Positions 29,700-31,020 of a stretch of 54,088 bases of DNA are shown here, one piece after another. The translations under genes were made by a program, and so were the position numbers. Within the stretch, counting starts at the first letter, position 1, and each line of letters begins with the position of its first letter. The notes beneath the pieces are model-generated. The model had not been told where the DNA came from and did not search any database. It saw only the letters and a program-made list of their open reading frames with translations. The stretch lies in contig ADNK01002456.1 in NCBI GenBank assembly GCA_000320545.1, forward strand, positions 1 through 54,088. The letters are read 5' to 3'. The stretch comes from Bigelowiella natans CCMP2755 (lineage: Eukaryota; Protista; Cercozoa).

Positions 29700-31020
29700 T
29701 CTTGTGAAGAAAAGTGGAACGAATGATGACCGCCTTGCGCGTCGATTCACCTCACTGAGTGCATCAGCATGGGTCAACATGACACGCACACGCATGTGCA
29801 TGCATTGGGACTGCTGAAGACCTCACACTAGCACATGCATGACAAGGACCGCCTTCACTGTGGACGTTGTTGGATGAAAGCAAGCGTTCATTTGCATGCT
29901 AGCATGTTCCATGGGCACCAGAGCAAGGTGTTGACAAGCCCTCACAATGAAGTTTTTCCAGTTTTTGTTTGCATTGTGGCCGCTGCTGCAACCAAGCTCA
30001 CAATGACGAGCAGCAATTCGTTGATGATGTGCGTCACTTCATGTTGGAGGGCCAGAGCTAGCAGAGGGGGCAGCATGAGGACGTGAAGTTCCAGAGTTTC
30101 TGGTCTGCCAACACCACTGCTAGACTGCACGGCACGAGCACAATCATTGGTTGATGACTTGAATCACGATGAACAATGAGTGAATTGAACACTGAGCACT
30201 GACTGGCACACGAAACAACATCGGAGCCCTCTCGGCGGTTCTGGGGTTCAGACGTTCTGGCGGCACGTGTGTCGTGGCTTGTTTGGTGCATGTGTGGACA
30301 TGAACAGAGCATGTGTGCTTTCCAAGTGCGTGTGGTGTGACATTGCTAGCGTTGGCCACAACACTACGTTGCACTTTTTTGGGCGATGAAAGTTCATCGA
30401 ACCCTGGTCGCATGAGTGAATTGGCAAAGCATGCATTTTTCAGATGCACCAATCCAGCAATGGAATTGCTTTGTTCACTCACTCACTCGTTCTTTTGTGC
30501 AACAAACGATCGCGACATCCAGCAAGACTTGAACGATTGCATGAGTGAACGAATGGTGAACGAAGCAGTTCCAATGGTGCAGTTGAAAGGATTTGGACTC
30601 ACACAACCAACAGCGAGATCTCTGCACATTGAACGGATTGCGACTTGAACAAGTGCATGAAAGAACGAATGAATGAACGAACGAAGCAATGTTCCAGGAC
30701 AGGGCGGGCTAGCGGGGTGCAGCCGAGTGAACAATGAACAATGAACAATGATGACGAGCCACACTTCCAAAATGTTGCAAGACGTTTGCAGTGTGCGAAA
30801 TGCAGTGCCTCGAACTGGCTTCAGTGAGGACTGTGACTAGCAAATCAACTAGCTGGTTGAGTGAGTGAAAAGTGATTCCAATGCCAGAATGGTGCAGCTG
30901 CAAGGATCAGCTGGAAAGATCATCAGAAATTTGGAAACAATTTCTGTGGAAGTGTTTTGAAAATGATGCATGAATGAAGGGGAGCGGTTGAAAGGATCAT
31001 GGATGTGCTGACTCACAACA
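29700..31020. mobile_element. TpA-erased repeat/transposon relic
   Basis: 30759-30832 is homologous (inverted) to 36491-36565, and GCGGGCTAGCGGG is shared with ~36968. Frames are broken. Confidence 0.5.

Follow-up and report, generated by a model that had tools for sequence, protein, structure and literature searches.

A TpA-erased island reaching into a GNAT gene of Bigelowiella natans: a probable end state of TpA hypermutation

The window, a stretch of 54,088 nt of Bigelowiella natans DNA, contains a spliced and expressed GNAT acetyltransferase gene (31242-32300, plus strand) whose 5' end lies within an island from which the dinucleotide TpA has been almost entirely erased. The bounds of this island (29682-31425), set by a two-state segmentation of the window, enclose intergenic DNA and the 5' end of the GNAT gene, with an upstream transcript flanking it on one side and the GNAT gene on the other; its 1744 nt retain 5 TA outside of CTAG and 9 CTAG. 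A left shoulder at 29500-29700 is partly eroded and carries a short CTAG-rich run. Elsewhere in the window lie two long single-ORF genes with chlorarachniophyte orthologues, one for a bacterial-type aspartyl-tRNA synthetase (11814-13955), the ORF of which has a 97% identity to a JGI Bigna1 model, and one for a flavin amine oxidase (45777-47480).

An earlier note, made by reading the sequence, had counted 9 TpA (8 CTAG, 1 CTAC) in positions 29701-31020 against some 80-90 expected. A dinucleotide recount gave the same 9, with an expectation of 86 (O/E 0.10; Poisson P about 3e-26 for the deficit). The eight CTAG fall between 29828 and 30852 (T at 29829, 29900, 30059, 30121, 30347, 30710, 30838 and 30850) and the single CTAC is at 30365; the fraction of TpA within CTAG, 8 of 9, compares with a CTAG share of 4.1% in the window (P about 7e-11). 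The abundance of TG and CA and the retention of CpG described in the note are also borne out, with O/E values in 29701-31020 of 1.84 for TG, 1.71 for CA and 0.69 for CG, compared with 0.72 for CG window-wide. Decay of CpG was considered as the source of TG and CA and rejected: the CG O/E shows no change, and columns derived from TA in repeat alignments are nearly without CG.

Two transposon-like relics account for about 210 of the 1744 nt, and the remainder was without a match and is not viral as far as seen. The first is a 75-nt MITE-like relic (30265-30339, minus strand) of an element of ~265 bp with imperfect palindromic ends, intact copies of which, located elsewhere, carry about 27 TpA each. 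The second (30729-30859, minus strand), 130 nt long, is the LINE-like 3' terminus of a high-copy repeat whose candidate matches number over 600; two of the CTAG that survive, with T at 30838 and at 30850, lie within it. This repeat has a 7-nt microsatellite tail, one sharp end and one decaying end, and it is by this architecture only that it resembles a 5'-truncated LINE; a search of the repeat for a reverse transcriptase domain found none. It may be speculated that the tail unit derives from a TA-containing unit. A Pfam search with the ORFs of the island and of the fully erased loci gave no match, and Rfam returned for the island nothing but a weak miRNA-precursor match, far below the cut-off.

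The loss of TpA is not confined to the relics. It extends about 550 nt beyond the last repeat, across GNAT exon 1 (31242-31378, TA O/E 0.12) and the greater part of intron 1, both inside the island, while the later exons and introns of the gene have a TA O/E of 0.75-1.33; erasure thus crosses unique DNA and reaches a host exon. The island is also transcribed on the minus strand at a low level (30453-31020); reads from other copies add to the apparent depth over the repeat. Four minus-strand reads have a non-templated T run at 30453, which is likely to be the poly(A) of this RNA. An AACAAA motif lies 17-22 nt upstream of 30453 on the minus strand, and one may speculate that it is the TA-to-CA scar of an AATAAA.

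The direction of change could be read from copies of the MITE. Five near-intact copies are TA-rich, and so are their flanks. At the ancestral TA positions, alignment of 21 further copies gave 67 CA, 58 TG, 57 TA and 1 CG, with 10 observations of different letters, most of them from a single variant site; these counts agree with the directional, strand-symmetric conversion of TA to TG or CA that the note had proposed over repeat relics. In copies located in TA-poor flanks, TA was lost at 55 of 61 positions and other positions were changed at 26 of 723, so that the conversion of TA, which yields TG or CA and affects both strands, is roughly 30-fold faster per base than other substitutions in the same copies. 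Loss is predicted by the state of the surrounding region, since loss of TA from a copy correlates with flank TA O/E (rho -0.73, p 2e-5), a p-value that, like the others from these repeats, is optimistic because the copies are not phylogenetically independent; as the intact copies are also the youngest, insertion age and region are confounded. Both outcomes, TG and CA, occur at 18 of 22 MITE TA columns, and no strand runs or strand coordination of hits were found among these columns. Each repeat copy was hit independently, one site at a time, and the pattern fits single hits accumulated over time. Two MITE copies (L075:1451-1710 and L080:1364-1623) retain more than half of their TA within TA-poor flanks; these copies may have inserted later, into islands that were already there, and would then still be undergoing erosion.

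Hypermutation of this kind is already known in B. natans. In mutation-accumulation lines, two integrated viral regions acquired 231 mutations, a rate about 1000 times background and nearly all of them TpA to TpG or CpA, and 124 TpA-poor clusters were reported genome-wide (Mettrop et al., bioRxiv 10.64898/2026.01.13.699255). The main target in that work is single-copy, transposons being only suggested, and an ADAT2-like deaminase, stated as not conclusive, was proposed in a comparison with RIP (Mettrop et al., 10.64898/2026.01.13.699255). The note had known of no characterised pathway, a statement that is superseded by this experimental demonstration in the same species. Like the process of the preprint, the one that shaped the island acts in B. 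natans nuclear DNA, by the same TpA to TpG/CpA transitions on both strands, and left the same TpA-poor, CpA/TpG-rich footprint, which in 29701-31020 amounts to 0.10 and about 1.78 from dinucleotide counts. The regions of the preprint differ in being large and viral, while the island is, as far as seen, non-viral, is saturated and, at 1.7 kb, falls below the 3-kb cluster rule. We consider it very probable that the two processes are one and the same. The two DNA runs available here revealed no new mutation at the island, where almost no TpA targets are left. What the present analysis adds to the preprint is before-and-after evidence on ordinary transposons, a graded rule for CTAG, ApT as a side target, a collateral effect on a host exon and a lack of coordination between strands; the main text of the preprint makes no mention of CTAG, wider context or telomeres.

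It was proposed in the note that only TAH is attacked and that CTAG, which reads TAG on both strands, is immune. CTAG is slow, the slowest among TpA contexts, but it is not immune: in copies of the LINE-like repeat it was lost to TG or CA in 21 of 87 observations. The same copies contradict the strict TAH rule, which allows CTAC to become only CTGC and TTAG only TCAG, as both go both ways about equally (11 vs 10 for CTAC, 10 vs 14 for TTAG). When islands were defined from flanking windows only, survival relative to background was 1.38 for CTAG (0.62 by a second measure, family share), 0.09 for CTAA/TTAG, 0.06 for CTAC/GTAG, 0.02 for ATAG/CTAT and 0.02 or less for the others. Per-strand rates, pooled over families of unequal saturation, were 0.31 with neither neighbour, 0.27 with G at +1, 0.25 with C at -2 and 0.15 with both; C before the T and G after the A thus both seem to slow the loss of TpA. 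The mutations observed directly also disagree with the TAH rule, since by hand count 20 of the 206 scaffold-10 de novo TpA hits in Table S2 of the preprint sit in a TAG context. Taking the TAG availability of 22% in a proxy, the 3.5-kb locus L061 (a viral insert piece around a capsid gene, counts only), this gives a rough relative rate of about 0.4 (p 0.0005). The simplest reading is that CTAG is the one site at which two mild slowing contexts come together on both strands; alternatively, CTAG may enjoy an extra protection, or the ancestral sequence may have been rich in CTAG. The TAG-context hits of scaffold_10 in Table S2 are skewed on the reference strand, with 17 CTA T>C and 3 TAG A>G (p 0.003).

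A second target is ApT. Adenines outside of TA had changed to G in 5.6% of cases before T and in 1.6% otherwise, and hot ApT columns were hit on one or the other strand, almost never on both. The scaffold-10 list of the preprint contains four A:T to G:C hits outside of TpA, and each of them is at ApT (chance about 0.003), unlike the text of the preprint, which places all hits on TpA. The order of rates is hence TpA far above ApT, and ApT above other A. In the LINE-like end (30760-30790, copies L002-L030) the hot ApT sites are ACATTT, AAATGT and AAATTC and the cold ones CAATGA, TCATTG and CCATGT, so that hotness depends on the wider flanks. Close mutation pairs in the same line in the table of the preprint (three within 10 nt, same strand) were considered as a sign of processivity and discarded, as cross-line pairs were also in excess.

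As a whole, the island is best explained as the saturated end state of the B. natans TpA hypermutation process, to which we assign a probability of roughly 85%. In the mechanism that we propose, a regional mark, of chromatin or small RNA, would define domains around foreign or repeated DNA and recruit a deaminase of the TadA/ADAT fold; the A of TpA would be turned into inosine, which would be read as G and fixed by replication. The resulting TG or CA would no longer be a target, each site being destroyed by its own mutation, and because of this domains would be depleted of TpA until only the slow CTAG were left. Enzymatic deamination of adenine is, on balance, the chemistry that we favour; the enzyme, its targeting and its function in defence we infer. 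Six candidate loci with a cytidine/adenosine deaminase fold (PF00383), among them Bn78255 with Bn77986, are present in the genome, none of them on this contig, and one candidate A_deamin locus, which may be ADAT1, is on C2414. It is conceivable, though we hold it only tentatively, that a natural domain-targeted DNA adenine deaminase serves as a general genome-defence mutator acting on MITEs, LINE-like ends, subtelomeric repeats and viruses, with a fingerprint of TpA far above ApT and of slowing where position -2 is C and position +1 is G; CTAG would then be the last to go because both of its neighbours slow the same deaminase. If true, the fingerprint could identify the enzyme in vitro, as any candidate must reproduce the context hierarchy, with the slow CTAG and the weak ApT as extra clues. 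Such a mutator, an equivalent of RIP that acts from A to G, would be the first natural case of DNA adenine hypermutation put to use on chromosomes, with relevance to genome defence and base editing.

Like RIP, the process makes dense, context-biased transitions over repeats and spills into flanks. RIP, however, converts C:G to T:A and creates TpA, whereas the process at the island converts T:A to C:G and removes it. Of about 9260 observations of C, no more than 205 were C>T and, with CG O/E unchanged, the note was right to set the island against both RIP and 5mC decay. Among known deaminases, TadA prefers a pyrimidine at -1 (PMC10586758), and TadA/ADAT2 and TadA-derived base editors resemble the present process in the change of A to G with a pyrimidine at -1 (here TA far above CAT); natural TadA differs in that it edits tRNA, and a chromatin-targeted DNA activity is proposed here. 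ADAR shares the change of A to G and a preferred 5' U, but is the poorer fit, given that 5' A is accepted too and that ADAR2 favours 3' G (PMC3113232), in disagreement with the nearly untouched AA and with TAG as the slowest TA triplet.

Since the change of TA to TG/CA is symmetric, the base that is hit cannot be read from the sequence. The same regional process could therefore act through a lesion or error on T, either thymine oxidation by a TET/JBP-like enzyme to 5-formyl- or 5-hydroxymethyl-uracil, or an error-prone polymerase, for example pol eta, that inserts G across from T. The WA hot spots of pol eta are a precedent for an error on the T side, as is 5hmU in dinoflagellate repeats for thymine oxidation. 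Yet AA is hardly touched (AAA 1.9%, AAC 1.0% and AAG 3.0%, vs 21-46% for TAN), which disfavours pol eta, and among changes of A transitions prevail (A>G 592, A>T 106, A>C 76). We regard a T-side origin as unlikely; a Tet_JBP search gave no match, in a setting where the control query matched nothing either. If adenine in silenced DNA were methylated to 6mA and then deaminated, and if CTAG were shielded by a modification of its own or by a bound protein, this would account for ApT as a second target, ApT being the usual eukaryotic context of 6mA, and for a CTAG survival (0.6-1.4) that exceeds the additive per-strand fit (0.22). The main target, however, is TpA and not ApT, and the two slowing contexts, when multiplied (per-strand 0.31, 0.27, 0.25, 0.15), give extra survival of CTAG without any protector, leaving this route improbable; an MT-A70 search gave no match and was uninformative.

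The island might also be composed simply of elements that already lacked TpA at their source, or selection might have acted against TA insertion targets. On the question of TpA-free sources, which the note had raised, the repeats are divided. The youngest copies of the LINE-like and GC-rich repeats already have few TpA, so that part of the TpA deficit of the island was inherited from the source element. The MITE source, on the other hand, is TA-rich, and its copies lose TA in different patterns; moreover, TpA is erased in the about 1.5 kb of island without a repeat match, and mutations were observed de novo in the preprint (Mettrop et al., 10.64898/2026.01.13.699255). A TpA-free source is thus largely refuted by the MITE alignment and very improbable as an account of the island. 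An artefact of assembly or sequencing is ruled out, because contigs from two Illumina DNA runs, one or both of which may be of the same strain as the assembly, have 0 differences from the unique parts of the island, agreeing base for base.

The recurrence of the pattern in separate islands, as described in the note, was recovered by the segmentation, which yielded four further TpA-erased segments in the window. One of them (36387-37715) contains, at 36487-36579, another instance of the LINE-like end, together with a GC-rich repeat of ~300 bp, and a third island (8403-9700) is made up of two segments, 8403-9184 and 9303-9700. The last (1-920) is at the contig end, where 1-325 holds one CCCTAA, then an 18-nt array with 27 CCCTGA, and CCCCAA at its inner edge. 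Both CCCTGA and CCCCAA are TA-loss derivatives of a putative TTAGGG-type telomere unit. At 602-842, a 116-nt tandem duplication has kept TA in one copy and carries TG at the matching sites of the other.
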